A stretch of DNA of 64,000 nucleotides from Ascoidea asiatica JCM 7603 (Eukaryota; Fungi; Ascomycota). Position numbers and translations under genes: made by a program. The DNA lies in contig BCKQ01000017.1 in NCBI GenBank assembly GCA_001600695.1, positions 160,629-224,628 on the forward strand. Direction: 5' to 3'. A model generated the notes under the pieces. That model was not told the DNA's origin. It worked only from the letters and a program-made list of their open reading frames with translations, and did not search any database. Shown one piece after another: positions 3,612-41,091 of this stretch (position 1 is the stretch's first letter; each line of letters opens with the position of its first letter).

Positions 3612-5135
3612 ATGACTCCAAAGTCATCTAAAAAACATCAAATCATTCCAAGTTTAATTCCTGAAAATTCTTTGACTTCTAAAATTCATCAAAAACTTAA
3701 AGATTCAGACCAAAGAATTATTGAAACTACAAAAAAAATTATTAATAAAAATCAATTAAATAACCAATCAAAAAATCAAATTCAAAAAAATTCAATAAGA
3801 CCAACAAAAAGAAGAAAAACTGTACCTGATAATCAAAGAAAAAGAGCTTTATTTAGTTGTGATAGATGTAAAAAAAAAAAAACAAAATGTAATAGAATAA
3901 TTTTAAAATCAAATGGTAAAAAAGATATTTATTATGATAATAAAACTCCATGTTTAAATTGTCAAAATGCAAATCAAAATTGTGTTACTACAATCCCAAG
4001 AAAAAGAAGAGTTTATGGTAATATTCAAAATCTTGGTTTACATTATGAAATTTTAATTTGTTTAATTTCTGGTTTATTTCCTGATATTGATGTTAATAAT
4101 ATAACTCAATTAAAAAAATTAGGTAAAAATTTCGATTTAGAAATGCCTGATCCAATTATTGATTATAAAGATAATGATAATGAAAATGATATTAATAATA
4201 ATAATAATATTAATAATGACATTGATATTAACAATGATAATGATAATAACAACAATAATAATAATAATAATAATAATAATGACGATGATGATTCAAAAGA
4301 TTTGACAATTTCAATATTAAGTAATAAATTATTTGAAGTTTTAAAAAATAATGGTATAAGAGCAAAAGCTTTTGATAAAGTAAAAGTTATAGGAGGTGAA
4401 TTAGATCCTTCAACTCTCTCAAATGAAAATGATCAATCAATTTCATCAGATACTAAAATCAATAATAAAATTGATAAAAATGATAATGATATTAAAACTA
4501 ATAATGATAATTCAAATGACAATTCAAAGTCCAATGTAAATAAAAATAATGACAATAAAATCAATGATAATAATAATATTCCAAACCAAAGTAATAATGA
4601 TGAAAACTTCACTGATTCAAATTTCATTATAGCAAAATCAAAAATAAATAACACTGAAGATTATGGAGTTGAAAGAATTGTTTATGATATTCAAGGTAGA
4701 CCACATTATATCGGTTCTGCAGGTTCTCCAGCTTTATTAAATGGTTTAAGTAATTTAATAATTAAAAACAAATGTTCAAAATCTTTAAAAATTTCTAAAC
4801 CTTCATCAAAACCATCAAAATTATTAAAATCCTTAAAATCTTCATCTTTAGAAGAATTTGTTACAACTAATTTCAATTCTTATCCTTCCGAAAAATTAAA
4901 TCAAGTTAGTGATAAAAATTTAAAAAATTTAACTTCAATTAAATCAAAAAAATTATTAGAAAAATTTCCTTTAATTAATTCTTTAAATAAAAATGAATCT
5001 GATTTTTATGTTAAAGTATTTTTTCAACGAATTCATCCATATTTTTATGTATTTGGTAATTCAATATTTAAAGAAAGATATTATCAATTTTGGGATGAAA
5101 TTGAATCAAGTTTTTCAAAAAAATTTCTCTTTTTA

Positions 5136-5169
<34 letters not shown>

Positions 5170-7667
5170 GCAATTATTCAACAAGTAATCCAAACATTAA
5201 CTTAAATATCAACTCACAAAATAAATCAGAAAATAAACCAGAAAATAACTTATCAAATGGCTGGATTGGTTGTATATATATGGTTTGGATTTTAGGTAGA
5301 AGATTTGTTAAATATCCAAATGGTGATCTAGATGATAATTTAGTTAATAAATATTTAGATTCAATTAAATATTTATTACCTGAAATTGTATTAACTCCAA
5401 CGGTAGTTGGAATTAGATTACTTTATTTATATTCTGTTTATTTATATTCAATTAAAAATAGAGATTCTTCTTGGATCTTAATTGGTTTAGCTTTACGTCA
5501 ATCTTTATCTTTAGGAATTCATAGAAAATCTGGTATAAGTTTATATTCAAAAAAAGCTGCAATTATTAGAAAACAATTATGGTGGTCAGTTTATAAATTT
5601 GAAATGGTTTTATGTTCAAATTTTGGTAGAACAACTTCTGTAAATGAAGAGGAAATTAATATTGATTATCCTAATGATATGTCAGTTGTTGAAGGTGATC
5701 CAATATTAACTAAAACTTATGTTCAAAGTGTAAAATTATCAAGAATATTTAATTCAATTTTAAATTCAAGAAAATTATTATATACTGGAGCTTCTATTGA
5801 TTCATCTTCACCTTTAACATTACCAAATGTTGAAAGAACTTTAAAAATTAGAAAAAATCTTTTAAGTTTTATGAGAGATTTAATACCATTAAAACTTAAT
5901 ATTCAAAATATTCTAAAAGATATTAAAACTTTAATATTAAATGGTTATAATATAAATTCAGATTTTCATGAATTCACTGAAAAGGATGATTTAATAATGG
6001 TTAATTTAAGATTTCAAATTAAATTGCATTTACAATATCATTTATATGTTTTAAATTTAACTTTACCATTTATTCTATATATTGTAAATATAACAATTTC
6101 ACAATCAATTACAATTAAAGAATTTGATGATCCAATAAAATTAATAATTAAAAGTGGTATAAAATCTTCAATTTTAATGTCAGAATTACTTGATATTTTA
6201 AATAAACTTAATCAAATTGATGCAACAGTATATTTTGATGTATTTTATGGTTATAATGGTATTATGGCTTTAATACCAATTTTTATATATTTATCATCAA
6301 ATAATATAATTAAAAAAGATAAAAATGAAAAAGGAATTCCAAAATATCATAATACAATATCAATTGAAGGTAAAGAAATTGATAAAAAATTAATTTTAGA
6401 ATGTATTAAAAAAATAAGAGGCGCAATGAAAAACAAGTATGCAAAAACTGATGGAACTATGAAAAGAAGTTATGAAGTCTGTGAAACATTATTAAAAGAT
6501 CTTGGACTTCTTAATATTCTTGATAGATCAGTAAAATCAGATACAAATAGACCATTAAATCTTGAATTATCATTTAAAGCAGATGGATATGAATATAATG
6601 GAAGTTCTGATATTGATGAAAAAATCAAAAAAATTAAAAAACGATGGCAAGCAAGAATTAATGGAAATAATTTTTTATCAAGTTCATTAATCACAAAACC
6701 TGAAATAATTTCAAAAAGTTTATCAACTCCTCCTATAGTTGATTCTTCAATAATTGATGTAAAAAACAAAGAAAACAAAACTGCAAGTGAACATTTTTTA
6801 AATTCAAAAGAAGATAAGTTTACTTATAATGCAGCTGAACGAGAAAGTAAAATTTTCTTCAATAATTATCATGAAAGTGCCGAAAGGCTAACAGATGTTT
6901 ATTCTTCAAGTCTCAATCAACCATCCCGAAACTCGGTATTTCCTTACGGGAATAATAATCAAGAAAATAATCAAGGATCCTCAATTTATCAGCAAAATGC
7001 TTCATTTCCTTTAAATAATAGTAAAAATCTGACATCAGATTATCGTACTCCAATGAATAGTGAAATAAGAAGTAATTTTTCAGAAACAAGTGAAATAAGT
7101 ACAGAACCAGAAGTAATTCTTAATCATGAGATGATTGATTCTTTTTTTCAAGTTGCAAGTAATACCCTCAATTTCAATAACCCTTTTTATCCAAATAGAG
7201 GTCCAGATAATTCTCAAATGGCCAATAATGCTCCTTCTTGTTCTAATGATACTTCTACAAATATCTGCAATAATAACAATCATAATAATAATAGTTGTAA
7301 TAATGGGAATGGGAATGTTATAAATAATTGCGATAATTGTAATATGAATAATAATATTTCTACTGGCCCTAACAACGGTAATAACAATCTATTTGCAAAC
7401 GACTATTTATCTGAATCGTCAAATTATAACATATTTTATCAAAACAGCTATCAAAATAGTAATCAAATTGACAATCAAATTGAAAATCAAAATATTAATC
7501 AAAGCAACCTTCAAAACAATACTCAAAACAATGTTCAAAACACTACTACTCGACAAAACAATTATATGGATGAAAACTTAAGAAAAGTGATGGCACAAAG
7601 CAACGACTTGTTCAAGTACGTGGACATTGAAGATTTGCAAGACCTTTTTGATTCTAAAATACTATAA
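3612..7667 (+). CDS. Zn(II)2Cys6 fungal transcription factor with middle homology region
   Basis: CX2CX6CX20CX2CX6C; MHR-type motif LALRQSLSLGIHR...RKQLWWSVY..E...S..FGR; acidic-hydrophobic C terminus; poly-Asn tracts. Confidence 0.92.
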
Positions 7668-7785
7668 CTTGCATAGCTCTTCCAATTAATTCTGTTATCA
7701 TCCTGTATTATTTTCTAAATATTTTATATCATCAACTGTATTATTTATTATATTTCGTTGTTTGCTTTCCAATTGAGTTTTTTCA

Positions 7786-7940
7786 GGGTCCGAAAAGAGC
7801 CGGCGCCAGGCCTTATTTTTTTCCGCTGGGTCTGGGCCGGTGAAAATGACCTTTTTGGAGCCCTACTTTTTTGGGTGGTAAAATTTCATTTTCCTTTCCA
7901 GAGGACAAATTGCAAAGAAACATGAAAAAAGAATATAAAA
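7786..7940 (+). promoter_or_regulatory. GC-rich promoter of the snoRNA host unit (Tbf1-like AGCCCTA, RRPE-like element, TATAAAA)
   Basis: GC island between two convergent CDSs, so it serves neither; AGCCCTA about 7859-7865; TATAAAA about 7934; lies just upstream of the intron. Confidence 0.55.
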
Positions 7941-8054
7941 GAATAAAAGAAACTTGAAAAGAATATGAAAAAATATTAGATCAAAAATAAGAATATTCAA
8001 GAAGAAAGATTTATATTTAAATGATTTTGGCTTTACCACTTTTCTAATCAAAAG

Positions 8055-8301
8055 GTATGTATTGAAGCTATTAAAAGGAATGAGATGAATTGAAATGTTA
8101 TGAAATGAATGAAAACTCAAATGATTAAAACTTCTGTCAATCCACTGAATTAATTTTGTCAAATATTTAATTAGCAATATGTCGAACTTGTGTCGTATGA
8201 TTTTGTTTTCATTCAATCATTTATAAATCATCTTCAATCTCAAATTTAAGATTATTTCAAGAAATACTTAAAGGACCATAGTTTACTAACTTTCTTTTTA
8301 G
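8055..8301 (+). other. Spliceosomal intron of a non-coding snoRNA host transcript
   Basis: AAG|GTATGT at 8055, TACTAAC at 8284-8290, pyrimidine tract, TAG at 8299-8301; nearby upstream ATGs (7922, 7965, 8021) stop before the donor. Confidence 0.88.
8107..8214 (+). ncRNA. Intronic box C/D snoRNA guiding 18S 2'-O-methylation at GGAU*UGACAGA (human U1288, S. cerevisiae U1231 equivalent; SNORD110/snoR14-like)
   Basis: 10-bp external stem GAATGAAAAC/GTTTTCATTC; box C ATGATTA 8121-8127; guide TCTGTCAATCC 8133-8143; D' CTGA 8145-8148; C' ATGTCGA 8179-8185; D ATGA 8197-8200; second antisense TTGTGTC to the adjacent 18S GACACAA. Confidence 0.85.
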
Positions 8302-8534
8302 TTTTTCAAGTATTCATAAAACTATATACTTTCTTTTAATAAATATCTTTTTTTTTTAAATTTTCAAAAAATCATATTTTCTTACACTAAATTTGATTAA
8401 ATTATGCTGTAGTTAAATTCTTTACTTTATTTTTCTTTTTTTTTTTTTTTTTTTTCTATTTACAGTTCTATATATATATAAATGACTTTCATTCCTGCAA
8501 AAGGATACTAAAAACTATTGAAAATGCTAAAAAA

Positions 8535-11243
8535 CTAAGATACATTCCCTTTGAAAAAACTCCAATTTTTCCATTCTTCATTTGATTCTTTAAACTGTTT
8601 CTCTTTCATTTCTTTTGAGATTCTCTCTGATCTTTTCTTAAACCAATTTTTTAAGTCTGAGCTTGGGTTTTCTTTAAAATTATATTTTTGATCCACTAAT
8701 TTATCAATTAATTTATTATAATTAACTTTATATGAATCTTCAATTATCTTTATAATTGAAAATTGCTTAAGATCATATGATGCTTTGAAAAAATTAATCA
8801 ATAAATCAATTTCTATTGATTTTTTATTTTTACTTTTTTTACAAAATTCTTCTAAAACTTCATCACTAATAATATCTTCAATTGAGAAATAATTTTTGTA
8901 AATCTCATTGAATTTTTTAAAGTTATTTTTATAACAATTATTTAAAAAATTAATTTTTTCATTATATAAATTCATCAAATATAATTTTTCATATATATTA
9001 AATATCCATTTTAATCTTAATATATCTTTTTTTATCAAACAAAATTCAACTATTAAATTTATAAGTTTATAATTAAATATTAATTTTAATTCTTCAAAAT
9101 TTTTGAAATTATAAATTGATTTAAATCTTACTGGAATAATATTAAATTCATTTCTTAGGAAAATCCTTAGTTGTTTTTTATTATTTGAAGGATTTTCAAC
9201 AATTATTGAATTGAATATAACTTTATTTAATAATAAATTAAATGTATTAAACTCTTTAAAGATTAAACAAGTATAAAGTAATTCATTTATACACTCACTT
9301 GAAGTTGTAAATAATGATGATCCTTTCCTTTTAAATTTTTTCCTAAATTCTTTTAATAAAATTTTATTACCTCCATAATTAGAATTTCGTACAATTAGTC
9401 TTAAATTGTTTAAATTTTTATTATAAAAAAATAAATTTACTAATTTATGCTGATATTTCTTTCTTGAATTTGAAATATGAATAATTCTGTATGGTTTATT
9501 TGTTAATTTATTTCTAAAAATTATTTTTCTGAATTTGTTGCTTTTTCTTCTTCTTTTTAATAGTAATCTATCTTTATTCATTCCCATAAATTTAACTACG
9601 GATTCTCTAGGAGCTATCACTTGTCTTTCAGAAAAGATATTTGTATTGGACACATTTTCTAAATTTTTCTTAACAGGTTTTGATATTAAATTAATGTCAG
9701 TTGATGATAAAGGAATGAATTCATAAACAAAAATTTTCAAATCTTCTTGATTAATTTTTGTTATTTTTTTTGTAAGATTTATCTCTTTAATTTTTTCCTG
9801 ATTATAAGATTTAGAATAAGATAAATCTCTGGAAGGTAAATTTCTGTAAAAATTTTGATAATCAAAATTATTTGATTTTTTTTGAAATTTTAACAATTTA
9901 ATTAATTTCAAAAAAATTTTTTTATTTTTTGACTGATAAGAAAATTTAATTAAATTTCTAAAGGTATCATGATTTGAGTTTGGAAGTAAAATCAAACTTT
10001 TTGGATTATTTTTGAATAATAGTAAACTTGAAATTATATATAAATAATTATTAAAATTTATATTATAATTTATATTCGGATTTTCATTTAAATTCAACGA
10101 ATTCAAATTTATTAATTTTTTAAAAATATTTAAACATAAATCATTTGTTATTTTGAAATCATTCAATAAAGAAGATTTAATTAAAAGCTTTGAAATATTT
10201 ATAATTAAATCTTCTTTAATTTTATTAGATTTGAAATTTTTAATGATCTGGTTTAATTCACTATCAAATGGCTTTATTAATTCTTCAAAACTATCAATAT
10301 CTATCAATTTATTTGAATTCTTTGATTCGAATAAAGAATTTTCAACCATTTTAAAACTTTTATGTTCATAAATATTATTCTCATTATTGATATTGTTATT
10401 AATATGTGATAAAGAATTCATGATTGAATTATTAAATGAATTATTTGAATCATAATAAACATATTTTGAAGAGGTTAAATTTTTATATAAAAGCTGTTTG
10501 AAATTTGAATTTATATTGAATAGAATTGAATTTAGAGTTAGTTTCTGTTTAGATAAATCTGATAAATAATTTGGGTAAATAATTTGAAGAAATTTTTTCA
10601 AAGGACTCAATTGTAAATCTGATAATTTAATATCATAATTACTTAAGTTTTTTATAAGTTTATGATTTTTCCCTTTTCTATTCTTAAATTTTAAGTTATT
10701 GTAACTTTTATTATTATCATCATTGAATTGATTATTCATGGAGTTTTTGATATAAGTTTCGAATATTAAAATGGATAAAAATTGGCTCAAAATATAATTA
10801 GATAAATTTTGAGTTGAACTTAAACTAACTATTGAATTCTTTTCAGAACTCTTTGAAGATAAGTGAGTATTGAATATATCTTCATCAATAAAATCCTCAA
10901 TTGATTCTTTCTTAGATTCATTATTGAAATCAGATAAATCAGATTTATTGTTAAAATATAATTCTAAAGGCAAATCATCTAGCCACCTAATGTAATTGGA
11001 CAAGTTCTTCTTATTTTTATGATTTGATTCCAATTCCAATTGCAATTTTAATAATAATATGTCATCACTGTTTCTTTTCTCTAGTTTGTTTATACTTTTT
11101 ATATTGTTTGAATTGGATTTTATATCGAAAGTTGTCAGAATTGTGGAACATGAAATTGATCTGGATATTAGAAGACATGTTGAACTAGAATGATTAATCT
11201 TTATTCTAGACAACATACTCATCATCATCATCATCATCATCAT
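8535..11243 (-). CDS. Uncharacterised 902-aa protein, probably mitochondrial
   Basis: Long ORF; Arg/Ser-rich, acid-free N terminus; Puf3 motif TGTAAATA in the 3' UTR; start ambiguous within an (ATG)n run. Confidence 0.75.
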   Translation of the reverse strand: MMMMMMMMSMLSRIKINHSSSTCLLISRSISCSTILTTFDIKSNSNNIKSINKLEKRNSDDILLLKLQLELESNHKNKKNLSNYIRWLDDLPLELYFNNKSDLSDFNNESKKESIEDFIDEDIFNTHLSSKSSEKNSIVSLSSTQNLSNYILSQFLSILIFETYIKNSMNNQFNDDNNKSYNNLKFKNRKGKNHKLIKNLSNYDIKLSDLQLSPLKKFLQIIYPNYLSDLSKQKLTLNSILFNINSNFKQLLYKNLTSSKYVYYDSNNSFNNSIMNSLSHINNNINNENNIYEHKSFKMVENSLFESKNSNKLIDIDSFEELIKPFDSELNQIIKNFKSNKIKEDLIINISKLLIKSSLLNDFKITNDLCLNIFKKLINLNSLNLNENPNINYNINFNNYLYIISSLLLFKNNPKSLILLPNSNHDTFRNLIKFSYQSKNKKIFLKLIKLLKFQKKSNNFDYQNFYRNLPSRDLSYSKSYNQEKIKEINLTKKITKINQEDLKIFVYEFIPLSSTDINLISKPVKKNLENVSNTNIFSERQVIAPRESVVKFMGMNKDRLLLKRRRKSNKFRKIIFRNKLTNKPYRIIHISNSRKKYQHKLVNLFFYNKNLNNLRLIVRNSNYGGNKILLKEFRKKFKRKGSSLFTTSSECINELLYTCLIFKEFNTFNLLLNKVIFNSIIVENPSNNKKQLRIFLRNEFNIIPVRFKSIYNFKNFEELKLIFNYKLINLIVEFCLIKKDILRLKWIFNIYEKLYLMNLYNEKINFLNNCYKNNFKKFNEIYKNYFSIEDIISDEVLEEFCKKSKNKKSIEIDLLINFFKASYDLKQFSIIKIIEDSYKVNYNKLIDKLVDQKYNFKENPSSDLKNWFKKRSERISKEMKEKQFKESNEEWKNWSFFKGNVS

Positions 11244-11599
11244 CTACTTCCTCTTTTCTTCGAAGAGAGACCCTGGTAGTGCTTTGTATTCTTATCGTAT
11301 CCTCATCCTTTGATGAATCAATGAAGTCTTCAATCAGTTTAAACCAGAATCAACTAAAAATATTTCACTAGATCAGTCTGATTCCAAAATATTTCAGTTT
11401 CTTTTGAGAAATCTCCAGTTATTCATTATTCAAATTAAATCTCCTCACAATTTCAATATCGCGAGCAAAACTACGACCAATGCGCTTTACGTAATCAGCG
11501 CTGTGCGTAGATAAGGACTACCAAATACACTGCTTTTTAGTGGCACATAATATATTAGAGACCTTACTATTGGCAATTATTACATAATCATTTTTTCGG

Positions 11600-11608
11600 A
11601 TGACTGAT
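11600..11608 (+). promoter_or_regulatory. Gcn4-like site ATGACTGAT upstream of TRP2
   Basis: One mismatch to ATGACTCAT; TRP2 is a classical Gcn4 target. Confidence 0.6.
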
Positions 11609-11619
11609 TCTATTTGTTT

Positions 11620-11664
11620 CACATATTTCACATATTTCACATATTGCACATATTGCACATATTT
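11620..11664 (+). repeat. 9-bp tandem repeat CACATATT(T/G) x5
   Basis: Direct reading. Confidence 0.9.
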
Positions 11665-11847
11665 GATATTTCACAATTAGTAAATAAATGAAATATTAGA
11701 TTCAATAATCAATAATCAATAATTGAAACTTTTATTCATTCAAGTCATTTTATTTTATTTTCTTAAAAATTAGGTATATTTTTTTTTCTACTCAATTTTA
11801 ATAAATAACTTTTTTCTTTCGAGATTTCCATTTACTGTCTAACTACA

Positions 11848-13488
11848 ATGAGTGTATGTGCTATTTGCTAGAATATTTTACTATGTCTGAAACTTTCAAA
11901 AACTAACTTTCTTTTTGTTAATTTATTACTTTATTAACTTTGTTTAATAATGTTGAAGTCAGGAATTCAACCTTCTTTTGAAAGTCTATATGATCTAATT
12001 TTACAACACAGATCTTCTATAGGTCAAGACTCTCTTTATAATTTATATCCAATATATTCCTTCCTTAATAATGATTCATTAACTCCTCATTTAGCATACT
12101 TAAAATTATCTGATATAACTCCAAAAGTTCCAAGTTTTTTAATGGAATCTGCTAAAAATGGTGATACTTTAGGTAGATATTCTTTTATTGGGGTAAATCC
12201 AAGAAAAATCATATCTTCTGGTATAAATAATGATCAATCTACTTATGTTGATCCATTAATTAATCTTGAGATTGAATTGAATAAATTTAAACAAGCTCCA
12301 ATTCCTGGTTCAAATATACCCCCTTTAAATGGTGGTGCAATTGGTTATATTAGTTATGATTGTATAAAATATTTTGAACCAACTACAAAAACCCCATTAA
12401 AAGATACTTTAAATTTACCTGAATCAATGATTATGCTTTTTGATTTAATTATCGCCTTTGATAATGTATTTCAAAGATTTCAAATTATAAATAATATTCA
12501 AATTTCTATTAATGATAATAAATCCAAAATTTTAGAAAAATATAATTCAGCTTCTTTACAGATTAAAAAAATTGAGTCAAAGTTATTAGATAATACTTCA
12601 AAAATTCCATATCCAGTTCAACCAAAAATTGTTAAAAATCAAAAATTTACTTCAAATATTGGTCAAAGTGGTTATGAAAATTATGTTAAAACTTTAAAAA
12701 ATCATATATTAGTAGGTGATATTATTCAAGCTGTACCTTCTCAAAGAATCTCAAGACCAACTTCTTTACATCCTTTTAATATCTATAGACAATTAAGAAA
12801 TGTAAATCCTTCTCCATATTTATTTTATATTGATTATTTAGATTTTCAAATTGTGGGTGCTTCTCCTGAATTATTAGTTAAAACTGATGAAAAAAATAAA
12901 GTTATAACTCATCCAATTGCTGGAACTATAAAAAGAGGTAAAACTAAAGAAGAAGACGATAACTTTGCTAATATTTTACAAAATTCAAAAAAAGATAGAG
13001 CCGAACATATTATGTTAGTAGATTTAGCTAGAAATGATATTAATAGAGTTTGTGATCCTTTAACAACTTCGGTTGATAGATTATTAACAATTGAAAGATT
13101 TTCTCACGTAATGCATTTGGTATCTGAAGTTTCAGGTACGTTAAGACCAGATAAAACTAGATTTGATGCATTCAGATCAATTTTTCCTGCTGGAACTGTT
13201 AGTGGTGCTCCAAAAGTTAAAGCAATGCAATTAATATCAAAATTAGAAGGTGAAAAAAGAGGTGTTTATGCAGGTGCTGTTGGAAATTGGGGTTATGATG
13301 GTAAAATAATGAATACTTGTATTGCTTTAAGAACAATGGTTGTTAAAGATGGTATCGCATATTTACAAGCAGGTGGTGGAATCGTTCATGATTCTGATCC
13401 AACTGATGAATATATTGAAACAATGAATAAAATGAAAGCAAATAATAATACAATTTTGCAAGCTGAAGAAAATTTTGGTTCTGATTAA
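11848..13488 (+). CDS. TRP2: Anthranilate synthase component I; probable structure exon 1 11848-11853, intron 11854-11958, exon 2 11959-13488
   Basis: Motifs FLMESA, GDIIQAVPSQR, NPSPY, ASPELL, AEHIMLVDLARND, FPAGTVSGAPK; ATGAGT|GTATGT donor, AACTAAC branch 11901-11907, in-frame AAG acceptor. Confidence 0.95.
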
Positions 13489-13634
13489 TTTATTGTTCAA
13501 TCAATTAGATAGTCTCTATAGTATTAAATAGTATATTATAGTGAAAGACAATAAAATATAATAGAAAATTGTCAATAATAAACTTCTCTTTTAAATCCAA
13601 TTTAAAACGAAATTGAAACAGTAACTCGTTAAAA

Positions 13635-16600
13635 TTATGGTTTTGAAGATAATAAATTGTGAACACTATCTTCAACATTTATATCGTCTTTTTCTTTTGA
13701 AATCAATGAAGCTAATAAATTTCTGGTTTCAAAACCCCAAATGTGTTCTCTTATCAATTCTTCTGATTTTTGACAAGATTTGGATATTTTAAAAGCACTA
13801 TCTAATATATCTTCTGGTAACCAAGCTAATTTGGCAGCATTGAGACCATAGGAACTTTTTGATATCCCTTCTTTCAAAGTGTAAAGAAAAGTGATTGTAG
13901 GAAATCTACTTTTGTCACTATTTTCATCCTCTAAGTATCCCATATGATAATTTTTCACAAGCTTAGAATATTTTTCTTCAAGTTTTGAAATTGAAATAAA
14001 ATGTGTGATAAATAACACTAAAGGCTTGATATCTTTACTTTCCAAAAAGTATTCTAGGACTGAACTTGCAATCGAAGATCCATCAATTGTTCCTGTCCCT
14101 CTGCCTATTTCATCTAAAATTATCAAAGATTTAGAATCACAATTATTCAAAATATTATTCGTTTCAATCATTTCAACCATAAAAGTAGACTGATTTCCAA
14201 TTAAATTATCTTCAGCCCCCATTCTGATGTGAACAGAACTGAAAGCAGACAAAGAACAAAAATCTGCTGGAACATAACAGCCTATTTGAGCCATTATAAC
14301 AATTAATGCAATCTGTTTAACAAACGATGATTTTCCTCCCATATTAGGACCTGTTAATATTATGGTTCTATTTTCATTTCGACTCATTGTTAAATCATTC
14401 GGTATATATGCTTGTTCTTCAAGAATTTGTTCTATTATAGGATTTCGACCATTCTTTATATTAATATATTGTTCGGTTTCATTATCAATAAAATTAGGCT
14501 TTACATAGTTTAATTTAGAAGATGTGATAGCAAGAGATATTAATGAGTCAATCATTGAAAGTTTCTCAATTAGTTTGTTTAAGTAAATGTAGTTGTCATC
14601 TATTTCACCTAAAAATTCATTCTTAAAAAAGTTGTCATTTTTGATAACTAATAAATCATTTAAATAGTTTTTCCTTTTTAATATCTCGATACATTTTGGC
14701 GTTCTGAATCTGGAAACTTTTTTTGTAGATGATATCTTTAGCCAATTATTCGGCAAATTCCGAGTATTACTATTCATAACCTCAATCAAAAGAGGCTCTT
14801 TTGATACTGTAGAATAATTAAGAGTTGGCCTTCTTAACATTTTCCTTACTAAATTTAATTCATCTTTTGCTGAAATATCTGTTTCGTCGATTTCTTCCTC
14901 TATTTCTAGTAAGCTGTTTCTGAAACTCGAAAAAGTGTTCATGAACTTGTCATGAGATCTTTCTTCGGTACTTAAAGGATCAGTTTCATTATTAGTATAA
15001 GATGAAATTTGTGATTTGAAAAAATTTAGAATTTTTTCATCTGGTTCAATATTTTTATCTAATGCCACAGAACTATCAATCATATTTATATAGTTTGTAA
15101 TTTTTATATCTAAGGTTTTACAAATCAAACTAATTTCATTAAATAGATGAAGTAATTCTTTGTTTTTAAAACACTTTTCAAAACTTTTAGCCTCATAATT
15201 ATTTATGAAAATATTTGTAATACCCTTAAAATGTTTCAAAAGTAAATATATCTCCTTTCTGCTAGATCTCTTATAATGTGCTCTCATTATACTTCGTTCA
15301 ATATCAACACTATTTTTTTTCAAAAAACTAATTAGAAGTTCGATCAAATAGAATACATTTCTTTTTTCCTTACTTGTTGAATCAGAAAAAGTAAAAATCT
15401 CTACCAAACTTTCAACTGAATTGATTCTATTGTATATAGAGTTCATGTTTATTAATGGTTTCAAGATCCAAGATCTAAGCATTCTGTATCCACTTTTTGT
15501 GGTAGTATTATCCAAAAGCCACATCAAAGAACCTTCTTCTTTTTGATTGGTTGAATTATTGAAAATTTCAAGATTTTTAATTGTTTGTGAAGATAAAATC
15601 ATATGATTAAAGCTTTGAAAGGATTTATAATTTGAAAACAATTTAAAAATACTATCAAGCTTGAATTCTTTTAAATATTGAATTGAAAAGAGTATCCCTG
15701 TTTTAATATCAGAATCAAATGAAGATATTAAATTTTTAAGCTCCTCGCTTTTTTCCTCATCATTATTTTGATGATCATTTTCGTCAAAGTAACTTAAAAG
15801 TTTGTCTTCATACTGTAAAGGATTTGGATATCCTTCGAAATCTTTTACTCTTATATTTTGATTATTCCATCCTCCAAATCTTTTTTCAAGCATTTTTCTA
15901 GTTATATCTGTAAAAGAACTTTTTACTATTATAAATTCGTTTGAGTCAAAAAAAAGCAATCTTGATTCCAATTCATTTCTTAAAAAATTGTCATGAAAGC
16001 TGTCATAAATAATATCTCCAGTACTTGGTTGAACTGCAACTAAAGAAATAGAAACATCATCTATTTTAGGGTTCTGTTTTTCAATAATTGAAATGATGTA
16101 ACTATTTTTTTTAGAATTAAAAATCACATCTTCATTTAAATTATCTTCCACATAAGTAGCAGAAGTGAAAACTTTTGTTATTTCCCGTTTGAATAAATTG
16201 CTTCCTTGTTTTATACTTGCTTTTTCAGTTTGTTCCACAACGCCAACTTTCAATCCACGAGAAATCAATCTTTTTATATGAATATGCAATCTATCAAGAG
16301 GAATTGATGAATGAGCCAATTTACTTTTGCTGTCAATATTTATTTTATCTATTTCAATTATACCTGGTATTAACATAATTTGAAGAATTTGTGACGCAAT
16401 CACAGCATCTTGTGCATAAAATACAAATTTATATCCACTCTGAACAACTAACAATTTATCAGGATTTTCAATCTTTAAATCAACATAAAATTGCTCTAAT
16501 GGAGTTAATTTTGGTTGACTTTTTTTAGCTTTTTTATTCACAAATTTTTTTATTTTCAGGTCTTGAGATTCTAATTGAGATGAGGATCGTTTTAAACTTT

Positions 16601-17117
16601 GAGATGTTTTGGAAATTGTATTTGTAGAATTCAAAGTTTCATTTGATTTATCATTAGAATTGCCTGGAGGATTTGTTTTGTCTTGATTGAAATTATTATC
16701 TGTTTTTAATCTAAATTTTTGGAAAATACTGGGTAGAATCTTTTGTTTCTGGTTTAAGTCTTTTTCAGTTAAATTTTCCAGATCGATTATTTCTTTTTGG
16801 TTTATTGCAACCTGCTTTTCGAGATCTACAACTATTGGTTCTTTATATTGTCCTTGTTGATTAATCTCAGTTTCTTCTTTCGAAAAGACTGTTAAATCAA
16901 TATCATCATATATGTTACCATACTTATCCACAATATCATTATCTTGTGTTAAATCAATGGTGTCAGATATTGATTCTTTATGCGTACTAACCGGTTTTGG
17001 TTTAAAAAAGTGACTAATCGATGGTTGAGAATTGGTATTTTGTTTATTGGGAGATTTTTTCTTTTTTGTTGTAATACTTTGACTCTTTGATGGAAAATAG
17101 ACACTTTTACGAACCAT
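13635..17117 (-). CDS. MSH3: MutS homologue 3 (mismatch repair)
   Basis: PIP box QPSISHFF, Msh3-type GYKF motif (not GxFYE), TGPNMGGKS, STFMVEM, LDEIGRGT, FITHF. The first ATG is 17117; the track start at 17159 is TTG. Confidence 0.95.
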   Translation of the reverse strand: MVRKSVYFPSKSQSITTKKKKSPNKQNTNSQPSISHFFKPKPVSTHKESISDTIDLTQDNDIVDKYGNIYDDIDLTVFSKEETEINQQGQYKEPIVVDLEKQVAINQKEIIDLENLTEKDLNQKQKILPSIFQKFRLKTDNNFNQDKTNPPGNSNDKSNETLNSTNTISKTSQSLKRSSSQLESQDLKIKKFVNKKAKKSQPKLTPLEQFYVDLKIENPDKLLVVQSGYKFVFYAQDAVIASQILQIMLIPGIIEIDKINIDSKSKLAHSSIPLDRLHIHIKRLISRGLKVGVVEQTEKASIKQGSNLFKREITKVFTSATYVEDNLNEDVIFNSKKNSYIISIIEKQNPKIDDVSISLVAVQPSTGDIIYDSFHDNFLRNELESRLLFFDSNEFIIVKSSFTDITRKMLEKRFGGWNNQNIRVKDFEGYPNPLQYEDKLLSYFDENDHQNNDEEKSEELKNLISSFDSDIKTGILFSIQYLKEFKLDSIFKLFSNYKSFQSFNHMILSSQTIKNLEIFNNSTNQKEEGSLMWLLDNTTTKSGYRMLRSWILKPLINMNSIYNRINSVESLVEIFTFSDSTSKEKRNVFYLIELLISFLKKNSVDIERSIMRAHYKRSSRKEIYLLLKHFKGITNIFINNYEAKSFEKCFKNKELLHLFNEISLICKTLDIKITNYINMIDSSVALDKNIEPDEKILNFFKSQISSYTNNETDPLSTEERSHDKFMNTFSSFRNSLLEIEEEIDETDISAKDELNLVRKMLRRPTLNYSTVSKEPLLIEVMNSNTRNLPNNWLKISSTKKVSRFRTPKCIEILKRKNYLNDLLVIKNDNFFKNEFLGEIDDNYIYLNKLIEKLSMIDSLISLAITSSKLNYVKPNFIDNETEQYINIKNGRNPIIEQILEEQAYIPNDLTMSRNENRTIILTGPNMGGKSSFVKQIALIVIMAQIGCYVPADFCSLSAFSSVHIRMGAEDNLIGNQSTFMVEMIETNNILNNCDSKSLIILDEIGRGTGTIDGSSIASSVLEYFLESKDIKPLVLFITHFISISKLEEKYSKLVKNYHMGYLEDENSDKSRFPTITFLYTLKEGISKSSYGLNAAKLAWLPEDILDSAFKISKSCQKSEELIREHIWGFETRNLLASLISKEKDDINVEDSVHNLLSSKP

Positions 17118-17664
17118 TTTCACTCTTTTGCTTTCTGCATTGGATCCAAAATACTTCAAATCTGGTGTATTTCATGAACTTTTCACTTCTCTTTTTTTTG
17201 AATTATTTTAGCTTTTTCACCAAGACAGGCAAATGAAAATGTTAAGGCTATTTTCCACTTTGTGTTCCGCGAGAGAGAGAAGGACTCCCGGTAAATTAGT
17301 CTCAGTGCGTAAAGCGAACTAAATCTTTAGTAAAAGAAGCTTTATTACAGAGTTTACTGAAGAGAATTGAAAAAATTCTGAAGAACTTCCTTTTGTTGAA
17401 GGAAAATCATTATGAAGAATTGAAAGATGTAAAATAAATTAAACTAAAATATAAGATATATAACAGAAGAAATGAAATAGGATAATGGACAAAACTTTTT
17501 TTTTATTAAAAAAAATATGCAACAATGATCAAACTTTTTGAAAAATAAAAAAAATCATATTACAAAAGATTTAAAACAGGATAACAATAAAATAAGGTAT
17601 CAATAAGAAAATGGACTTCTAAAAAAAAACATAAAGCTTTATAAGTAAAATTAATACTACTGAT

Positions 17665-22773: not shown

Positions 22774-24861
22774 ATGAATTCTTATCTAAAATTTTCAAAA
22801 AACTTATATATTAATTATTTCAAAAATAAAAATTCAATAAATTTAGTAAATTCAATAAATTCAATTAGATTCTATTCAAGAAAAATGTCAATTTCAAAAA
22901 CTACAATTCCATTTTCCAGAGAGCAATTAGAAAGTACTCTTAAAAGAAGATTTTTTATTGCTCCTTCTTTTGAATTATATGGTGGTGTTTCAGGTTTATA
23001 TGATTATGGTCCACCAGGTTGTGCATTTCAAGCAAATATTATTGATATTTGGAGAAAACATTTTATTTTAGAAGATGATATGTTAGAAGTTGATTGTTCA
23101 ATGTTAACTCCATATGATGTTTTAAAAACTTCTGGTCATGTTGATAAATTTTCTGATTGGATGTGTAAAGATTTAAAAACTAATGAAATCTTTAGAGCTG
23201 ATCATTTAATCGAAGAAGTTTTAGAATCAAGATTAAAAGGTGACAAAGAAGCAAGAGGTCAATCAATTAATGAGGATAATACTGAAAATGATAAAGATAA
23301 AAAAAAAAAAAAGAGAAAAAATAAAGTTAAAGAAATTAAAGCAATTAAATTAGATGATGAAACTATTGAAGAATATAAATCAATTTTAGCAAAAATTGAT
23401 GGCTATTCAGGTCCTGAATTAGGTCAATTAATGGAAAAATATAATATTTGTAATCCAACAACTGGTGATAAATTAGATCCTCCAATTGCTTTTAATCTAA
23501 TGTTTGAAACTGCAATTGGTCCTTCTGGTCAATTAAAAGCTTATTTAAGACCAGAAACTGCTCAAGGTCAATTTTTAAATTTTAATAAATTATATGATTT
23601 TAATAATTTAAAAATGCCCTTTGCTTCTGCTTCAATTGGTAAATCTTTTAGAAATGAAATTTCTCCAAGATCTGGTTTATTAAGAGTTAGAGAATTTTTA
23701 ATGGCTGAAATTGAACATTTTATTGATCCAAATGATAAATCTCATAAAAATTTTGATGAAATTAAAGATTTAAAATTATCTTTTTTACCAAGAAATATTC
23801 AACAAGAAGGTAAATCAACCCCAATTATTGATAAAATTGAAAATGCAGTTTCTTCAAAAATGGTTGATAATGAAACTTTAGGTTATTTTCTTGGTAGAAT
23901 TTATTTATTTTTAATAAAAATTGGTGTGGATTCAAAAAAAATTAGATTTAGACAACATATGGCAAATGAAATGGCTCATTATGCTGCTGATTGTTGGGAT
24001 GGTGAATTATTAACTTCATATGGTTGGATTGAATGTGTTGGTTGTGCTGATAGAAGTGCTTATGATTTATCTGTACATTCTGCAAAAACTAAAGTTAATT
24101 TAGTTGTTAGAGAATCTTTACCAGAACCAATTGAAGTTGAAAAATTAGAATTAACAATTCAAAAAAAAAAATTTGGTCCAAAATTTAGAAAAGATGGTTC
24201 AAAAGTTGAAAATTGGTTATTAGAAAGAAATGAAAAACAATTAGAATCTTTAAAAATTGAATTAGAGAAAAATGGAAAAGTTGTTTTTAAAGTTGAAGGT
24301 ATTGATTATGATATTGAACTTGATAAAAATTTTATTGATATTCAAAAAGTTACTAAAAAAGAACATATAAGAGAATATACTCCAAATGTTATTGAACCAT
24401 CTTTTGGTCTTGGACGTATTATATATTCAATATTTGAACATCAATTTTGGGCAAGACCTGAAGATCCTGCAAGAGGTGTTTTATCATTTCCACCTTTAGT
24501 TGCACCAACTAAAGTTTTATTAGTACCACTTTCTAATGTTAAAGAATTTTCACCAATTATAAAAGATATTTCAAAAATTTTAAGAAAATTACAAATTCCA
24601 TTTAAAATAGATGATTCATCAGCTTCAATTGGTAAAAGATATTCAAGAAATGATGAATTAGGTACACCATTTGGTATTACTATTGATTTTGAAAGTATTG
24701 AAGATAAATCAATAACTTTAAGAGATAGAGATTCAACTAAACAAGTTAGAGGATCTATTGAAAATGTTGTTAAAGCTATAAAAGATATGACATATGAAGG
24801 AATTAGTTGGAATGAAGGTACAAAAGAATTAACACCATTTGACTCAAAATCAGAAGAATAA
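22774..24861 (+). CDS. GRS1: Glycyl-tRNA synthetase, dual mitochondrial/cytosolic (second ATG at 22885)
   Basis: LKRRFF, YDYGPPG, YLRPETAQG, FRNEISPR, VIEPSFG; 37-aa presequence-like extension. Confidence 0.97.
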   Translation: MNSYLKFSKNLYINYFKNKNSINLVNSINSIRFYSRKMSISKTTIPFSREQLESTLKRRFFIAPSFELYGGVSGLYDYGPPGCAFQANIIDIWRKHFILEDDMLEVDCSMLTPYDVLKTSGHVDKFSDWMCKDLKTNEIFRADHLIEEVLESRLKGDKEARGQSINEDNTENDKDKKKKKRKNKVKEIKAIKLDDETIEEYKSILAKIDGYSGPELGQLMEKYNICNPTTGDKLDPPIAFNLMFETAIGPSGQLKAYLRPETAQGQFLNFNKLYDFNNLKMPFASASIGKSFRNEISPRSGLLRVREFLMAEIEHFIDPNDKSHKNFDEIKDLKLSFLPRNIQQEGKSTPIIDKIENAVSSKMVDNETLGYFLGRIYLFLIKIGVDSKKIRFRQHMANEMAHYAADCWDGELLTSYGWIECVGCADRSAYDLSVHSAKTKVNLVVRESLPEPIEVEKLELTIQKKKFGPKFRKDGSKVENWLLERNEKQLESLKIELEKNGKVVFKVEGIDYDIELDKNFIDIQKVTKKEHIREYTPNVIEPSFGLGRIIYSIFEHQFWARPEDPARGVLSFPPLVAPTKVLLVPLSNVKEFSPIIKDISKILRKLQIPFKIDDSSASIGKRYSRNDELGTPFGITIDFESIEDKSITLRDRDSTKQVRGSIENVVKAIKDMTYEGISWNEGTKELTPFDSKSEE

Positions 24862-24989
24862 TTTTAATGATTGTTATTTATATACAGTATATGTGAAAAG
24901 CAAAAAAAAATTTATTAACAAGATATAAGAATCATTTTCTATATTTATGTATCTATATAATTGGTTATATTACTAATTTATTAGTTTAT

Positions 24990-40994: not shown

Positions 40995-41091
40995 CGACAC
41001 AAGCAGGATTTGAACCTGCGCGGGAGAACCCAAAAGATGCCCCAATTTACAAGATTCGAGTCTTTCGCCTTAACCACTCGGCCATTGTGTC
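40995..41091 (-). tRNA. tRNA-Ser(CGA) with 16-nt intron (41039-41054)
   Basis: Acceptor GACACAA/TTGTGTC, G73, A box TGGCCGAGTGG, anticodon stem AAAGA/TCTTT with CGA at 41058-41056, long variable arm GGG-TTCT-CCC, B box GGTTCAAATCC, T-tract terminator. Confidence 0.97.

Follow-up and report, generated by a model that had tools for sequence, protein, structure and literature searches.

The locus

At positions 8106-8215 of the window, the whole 64,000-nt stretch of Ascoidea asiatica JCM 7603 DNA that was analysed, lies what is, judged from its sequence, a genuine single-copy box C/D snoRNA gene that is apparently unannotated. It is flanked by a gene for a Zn2Cys6 factor (3612-7667, forward strand) and by a 902-aa open reading frame (ORF; 8535-11243, reverse strand), and is composed of the following elements:

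8106-8116 with 8205-8215, forward strand: terminal stem of 11 Watson-Crick bp, seen in folds
8121-8127, forward strand: variant box C, ATGATTA (G6 replaced by U, which pairs with A1 of box D)
8133-8143, forward strand: D' guide, 11/11 complementary to proxy 18S 1228-1238, with U1231 as the fifth base (+5)
8144, forward strand: spacer A between the D' guide and box D'
8145-8148, forward strand: box D', CTGA, invariant in orthologues
8179-8185, forward strand: box C'-like ATGTCGA
8187-8194, forward strand: D-side arm CTTGTGTC, of which TTGTGTC is 8188-8194
8197-8200, forward strand: variant box D, ATGA

A first-pass annotation had recognized a box C/D snoRNA here, and all the elements that it named are present; the C'-like box, absent from its element list, is added to them. 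Its 10-bp outer stem is found as described within the limits 8107-8214, although the full stem has 11 bp. The guide forms 11 bp (at least 10 nt being the measure for the class) and ends 1 nt before box D', and internal D' and C' boxes are present. By chance, a guide followed by any base and CTGA should turn up 2e-5 times in 64 kb and 0.007 times in a genome. The 20.3-Mb, 71-contig assembly holds one copy of the gene, and DNA contigs from three runs are identical to the locus, although these may be the source of the assembly itself. The fold energy is unremarkable (z -1.0 to -1.4), and the mature snoRNA is inferred to be about 85-90 nt long. Elsewhere in the window, an intron-containing tRNA gene with anticodon CGA (Ser) matches Rfam at 40995-41091 on the reverse strand; it was missed by ARAGORN in bacterial mode.

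Orthologues and synteny

Homologues of the 902-aa ORF led to loci in Ascoidea rubescens (L235), Komagataella pastoris, Komagataella phaffii and a third, Komagataella-like contig (L236, L241, L240). In A. rubescens and at each Komagataella locus a snoRNA is convergent to this ORF and has ATGATTA, the same guide, CTGA and ATGA, while box C' reads ATGTTGA in A. rubescens and GTGACGA in Komagataella. A model trained without the orthologues scores L235 at 35 bits and L236 at 29 bits. Between the two Ascoidea species the loops and the upstream flank are unalignable, unlike the boxes, guide and arm. The snoRNA was not found in the corresponding interval of two other yeasts (L237/L238, L234), and the synteny of TRP2 and of the transcription-factor gene did not lead to a snoRNA orthologue.

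The TRP2 gene of the window is closest to that of A. rubescens (78%), and gene order is largely common to both species. Compared with A. rubescens (L126, L235), the region 3612-17159 has undergone a local rearrangement in which TRP2 is inverted; the A. rubescens snoRNA and 902-aa ORF homologue are located on another scaffold, adjoining a tRNA-synthetase gene whose homologue lies at about 22900-24900 of the window. The 902-aa ORF itself has no Pfam match, and its C-terminal part has homologues in A. rubescens and Komagataella. The Komagataella homologue is located between a CXXC gene and TRM112-kinase-MSH3, which we take to be the place of PET494 in S. cerevisiae, and the product is possibly a fast-evolving mitochondrial translational activator.

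Predicted host intron and biogenesis

The snoRNA lies in an intron, predicted from splice signals, of a non-coding host gene with the following features:

7784-7940, forward strand: putative host promoter, a GC-rich patch proposed from motif matches only
within 7784-7940, forward strand: Tbf1-like (about 7784 and 7859), RRPE-like (7880) and TATA (7934) motifs
8055-8060, forward strand: 5' splice site, GTATGT
8284-8290, forward strand: branch point, TACTAAC, with the branch A 89 nt after box D
8299-8301, forward strand: predicted 3' splice site, TAG, giving an intron of 247 nt (8055-8301)

Such pairs of splice signals are expected by chance 0.02 times in the window and about 0.001 times in local shuffles, and no ORF in the spliced host exons exceeds 9 codons. 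Similar signals surround the A. rubescens copy: GTATGT precedes box C by 49 nt, TACTGAC follows box D by 75 nt, and the putative promoter region has an RRPE-like element at an equal distance (-240) as well as Tbf1-like sites. Intron signals are also present in most fungal-type metagenomic homologues. In Komagataella the branch point is absent and a TATA box is located 45 nt upstream of box C, which suggests that the snoRNA is transcribed independently there and is apparently intron-free. The same snoRNA gene would thus be intron-hosted in Ascoidea and apparently intron-free in Komagataella. In the proposed model for Ascoidea, a non-coding host transcript made by Pol II would be spliced at 8055-8301 and the excised intron trimmed to the snoRNP.

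The D' guide and its target

Searches of the A. asiatica assembly for 18S and 5.8S recovered no rDNA, and the target was read on a proxy 18S, namely S. cerevisiae-like genes (L130, L167 and others) from contaminant contigs in bacterial assemblies, with S. cerevisiae numbering. Yeast rDNA contigs occur in dozens of bacterial genome assemblies (L130-L233) and are probably contamination; some are S. cerevisiae-like repeats of about 9.1 kb, and another, of 7682 nt, recurs in NPDC actinomycete assemblies.

On the proxy, the D' guide pairs at 11/11 positions with G1228-A1238 and the fifth base from box D' is U1231. As in the family described below, the guide is complementary to GGAUUGACAGA, with the Um1288/U1231 equivalent at +5. 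This bears out the first-pass annotation, which had read the guide as an exact complement of 18S with the methyl on U1231, the equivalent of human Um1288. By the +5 rule and the orthologues, the RNA most likely directs one methylation, at the U1231 equivalent of 18S: the guide would pair with G1228-A1238, and Nop1 would methylate the ribose of that U. Two other matches were rejected. An alternative D' target at 18S 1143-1153 leaves positions 2-3 beside box D' unpaired, and the conserved core fits 1228-1238; a loop match to 25S 2136-2144 is AT-rich and missing in A. rubescens.

The D-side arm

The TTGTGTC part of the arm is complementary, by perfect Watson-Crick pairing, to proxy 18S 1218-1224, upstream of the target, with C1220 at +5 from box D. 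Taken alone, a 7-bp match near the target has a p of about 0.02-0.06, or 0.37 with G-U pairs allowed, and is rescued by conservation in A. rubescens: CTTGTGTC is intact there at an unchanged distance from box D, and the 11-nt C'-D spacer is identical at 9/11 positions between the two species (p about 0.001). The Komagataella arm contains GTGTCT, which matches 18S 1217-1222, a 6-bp match that is marginal by itself (p 0.058); it lies 2 bases further from box D, with G1218 at +5. In three metagenomic homologues (L035, L103 and L109), GTGTC(T) is placed just after box D', in the D'-C' loop. The arm is conserved in few independent lineages and is not kept in most non-Saccharomycotina homologues.

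We consider it probable that the arm provides accessory pairing with 18S 1218-1224 and directs no second methylation, the shifted register in Komagataella favouring accessory pairing over methylation at C1220. Extra base-pairing is known as a short, movable rRNA complementarity beside the target, located in an unused guide region (van Nues 2011, PMC3116282). In Ascoidea, pairing of CTTGTGTC with the upstream stretch would help docking or the opening of the target helix. The extra, conserved C in CTTGTGTC predicts a G at position 1225 of Ascoidea 18S, and the Komagataella sequence TAGTGTCT predicts a U at 1223, or a bulge. The first-pass annotation had pointed to the D-side element and left the choice between accessory pairing and a second site. 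The element is real, being conserved in A. rubescens and partly, at the shifted register, in Komagataella; accessory pairing is favoured by an arm that is conserved and slides, while C1220 is disfavoured by the register shift and by being unlisted as a modified site.

It is unlikely, but conceivable, that the arm is conserved for another reason, such as pairing with some other RNA or a part in the structure, and that its match beside the target is incidental. D-side guides of the SNORD110/CD44 family do vary by clade, and rival complementarities of similar or lower energy are found on proxy rRNA, for example at 18S 478-487 (10 bp, two of them G-U); this match, however, has G-U as its fifth pair (+5) and becomes shorter when the A. 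rubescens sequence is used, whereas the match near the target is perfectly Watson-Crick and Komagataella and L035/L103/L109 also have matches to that 18S stretch.

It is quite improbable that the RNA is a double guide in Ascoidea, with an arm that, helped by docking of the D' guide, adds a second methyl at the C1220 equivalent. The arm's pairing is colinear with that of the D' target, C1220 is at +5 and Watson-Crick paired in the two Ascoidea species alike, and these species agree in the sequence of the arm and in its spacing from box D. The duplex, however, has 7 (perhaps 8) bp only, leaves unpaired the two nucleotides beside box D, one of which is variable, and is the one whose register is displaced to G1218 in Komagataella. 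In addition, a mass-spectrometry table for S. pombe has no modification between 1231 and 1248 (PMC4605285), and the C1220 equivalent is in none of the plant, human and yeast maps of a table of plant-conserved sites only (PMC11542601). If this were true, one snoRNP would methylate both the U1231 and the C1220 equivalents, separated by 11 nt on a continuous rRNA stretch, working at the latter with a duplex of only 7-8 bp and at a site absent from the eukaryotic maps consulted.

Variant boxes C and D

Returning to the snoRNA as a probable guide for one methylation with a probable accessory arm, its boxes read ATGATTA (8121-8127) and ATGA (8197-8200), and are both variant, as the first-pass annotation had stated. 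Position 6 of box C and position 1 of box D form a Watson-Crick pair, normally G-C, that closes stem II of the C/D motif. Since these positions pair, ATGATTA/ATGA can be read as a compensatory pair in which U-A replaces G-C. The GA, AG and U-U positions are kept, so that the kink-turn is retained at the level of sequence, and boxes C and D would form the usual kink-turn with U-A instead of G-C, as their covariation indicates.

This covariation was seen among homologues from a metagenome scan for the guide and D', which gave 115 matches; 74 chance guide matches in viral contigs served as the control, and L077 and L090 (possibly animal) and L104 (from a human-gut sample) were excluded from the metagenome counts. 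A C box is present upstream of the guide in 28/115 metagenome matches versus 0/74 viral-contig matches. The bases at box C position 6 and box D position 1 are T/A in 17 of these 28 loci, G/C in nine, T/C in one and G/A in none, with one unresolved (Fisher p 2e-6, a value that is overstated, the loci being related). An initial A in box D is known from a minority of cases in fungi, where this base is substituted in 4.2%, usually by A (PMC5824354).

The proposal that the outer stem compensates for the variant boxes was rejected: the two changed bases already form a Watson-Crick pair together, and the variant pair is also found in many homologues with terminal stems of 1-5 bp, so that rescue of the boxes is not to be credited to the 11-bp stem. 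That the non-consensus boxes mark a decayed or silent copy, or that the motifs cluster by chance, is very improbable, since, despite Rfam scores under the cut-offs, the gene is single copy, orthologues keep every one of its boxes, the guide, the arm and the splice sites in spite of flank divergence, and 17 other homologues have the identical pair of variant boxes.

Some metagenomic homologues have other second guides. L031, L038, L051, L106, L115 and L119 are predicted double-guide C/D snoRNAs, mostly with intron signals, and are a case of guide reshuffling in another clade; in these RNAs the terminal D box is the one that carries the U1231 guide, and a guide for 25S 2419-2430 (+5 = U2421) occupies the 5' half. 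Clade-specific 12-bp D-side guides are present for the 25S U2141 equivalent (L010, L015 and L039) and for the 18S A1152 equivalent (L045, L083, L086 and L099), two sites that are both missing from a modification table containing plant-conserved sites only (PMC11542601).

Comparison with known systems

The Ascoidea RNA is, with high probability, the orthologue of Neurospora crassa Nc CD44, S. pombe snR82, plant snoR14 and human SNORD110, intron-encoded and with a probable accessory arm. Nc CD44, an intronic RNA of 85 nt with northern and RT evidence, guides 18S-Um1227 via D'; the table that lists it gives S. pombe snR82, Arabidopsis snoR14 and human HBII-55 as its counterparts and none for S. 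cerevisiae (PMC2780460). In S. pombe, mass spectrometry shows 98% methylation at Um1248 of AAGGAUmU (PMC4605285), and primer extension confirmed the sites of a set of snoRNAs that includes snR82 (PMC4138321). Arabidopsis Um1235 corresponds to human Um1288 in a table whose S. cerevisiae entry for this site is empty (PMC11542601), in agreement with the first-pass statement that U1231 is unmethylated in that yeast; snoR14 and HBII-55 are grouped in Rfam clan CL00076 (PMC3511168). The surprise that had been attached to a site beyond the S. cerevisiae set is thus misplaced, both site and guide being long known in fungi, plants and human. Because the site is methylated in S. pombe, plants and human, the methylation is ancient and its absence from S. 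cerevisiae appears to be a loss; we infer that S. cerevisiae, by loss of the guide, is the exception rather than Ascoidea.

A check against Rfam, proposed earlier, was borne out in part: the SNORD110 model (RF00610) aligns across the guide and box D', yet at a sub-threshold 15 bits versus a cut-off of 64. No family matches the snoRNA locus at its gathering score, and snoR14 (RF01280) gives no hit at all. The fungal-type homologues tested are also under the Rfam cut-offs and only the plant-type loci L048 and L065 reach one. Scoring below the gathering thresholds, the Ascoidea RNA is better described as a functional orthologue than as an Rfam member, and the conserved U-A form of the C/D motif goes undetected by the Rfam models. 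Outside the supplement of a fungal snoRNAome survey, the literature searched does not report the family in Ascoidea or Komagataella. The present loci would extend an ancient snoRNA family into these budding yeasts, place the loss of Um1231 inside the Saccharomycotina and offer a ready-made guide, with Komagataella as a tractable host, for studying the role of the Um1231 methyl and the importance of the probable accessory arm.

Nc CD44 (EU780967) has the same D' guide core, box D' (CUGA) and 18S target (Um1227 = U1231), is similar in size and is also intron-encoded, but its boxes are the consensus UGAUGA/CUGA, in contrast to AUGAUUA/AUGA in Ascoidea, and its D side is predicted for 26S-Cm776, whereas the Ascoidea arm matches 18S beside the target. 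S. pombe snR82, the listed CD44 homologue for the same methylated site, is likened to the Ascoidea RNA by target and not by sequence. Human SNORD110 (HBII-55, RF00610) and plant snoR14 (RF01280) share the D' guide and the target (Um1288 and Um1235, respectively) but carry consensus boxes, and the D side of plant snoR14 guides 25S Um803, unlike the Ascoidea arm. Yeast snoRNAs with extra pairing of the snR75 type differ in that their function was demonstrated by mutation, while the Ascoidea arm is known from conservation only, and in most of them the pairing region is further from box D (PMC3116282); what they share with the Ascoidea RNA is a second guide region that carries a short, conserved stretch complementary to the rRNA flanking the methylation site.
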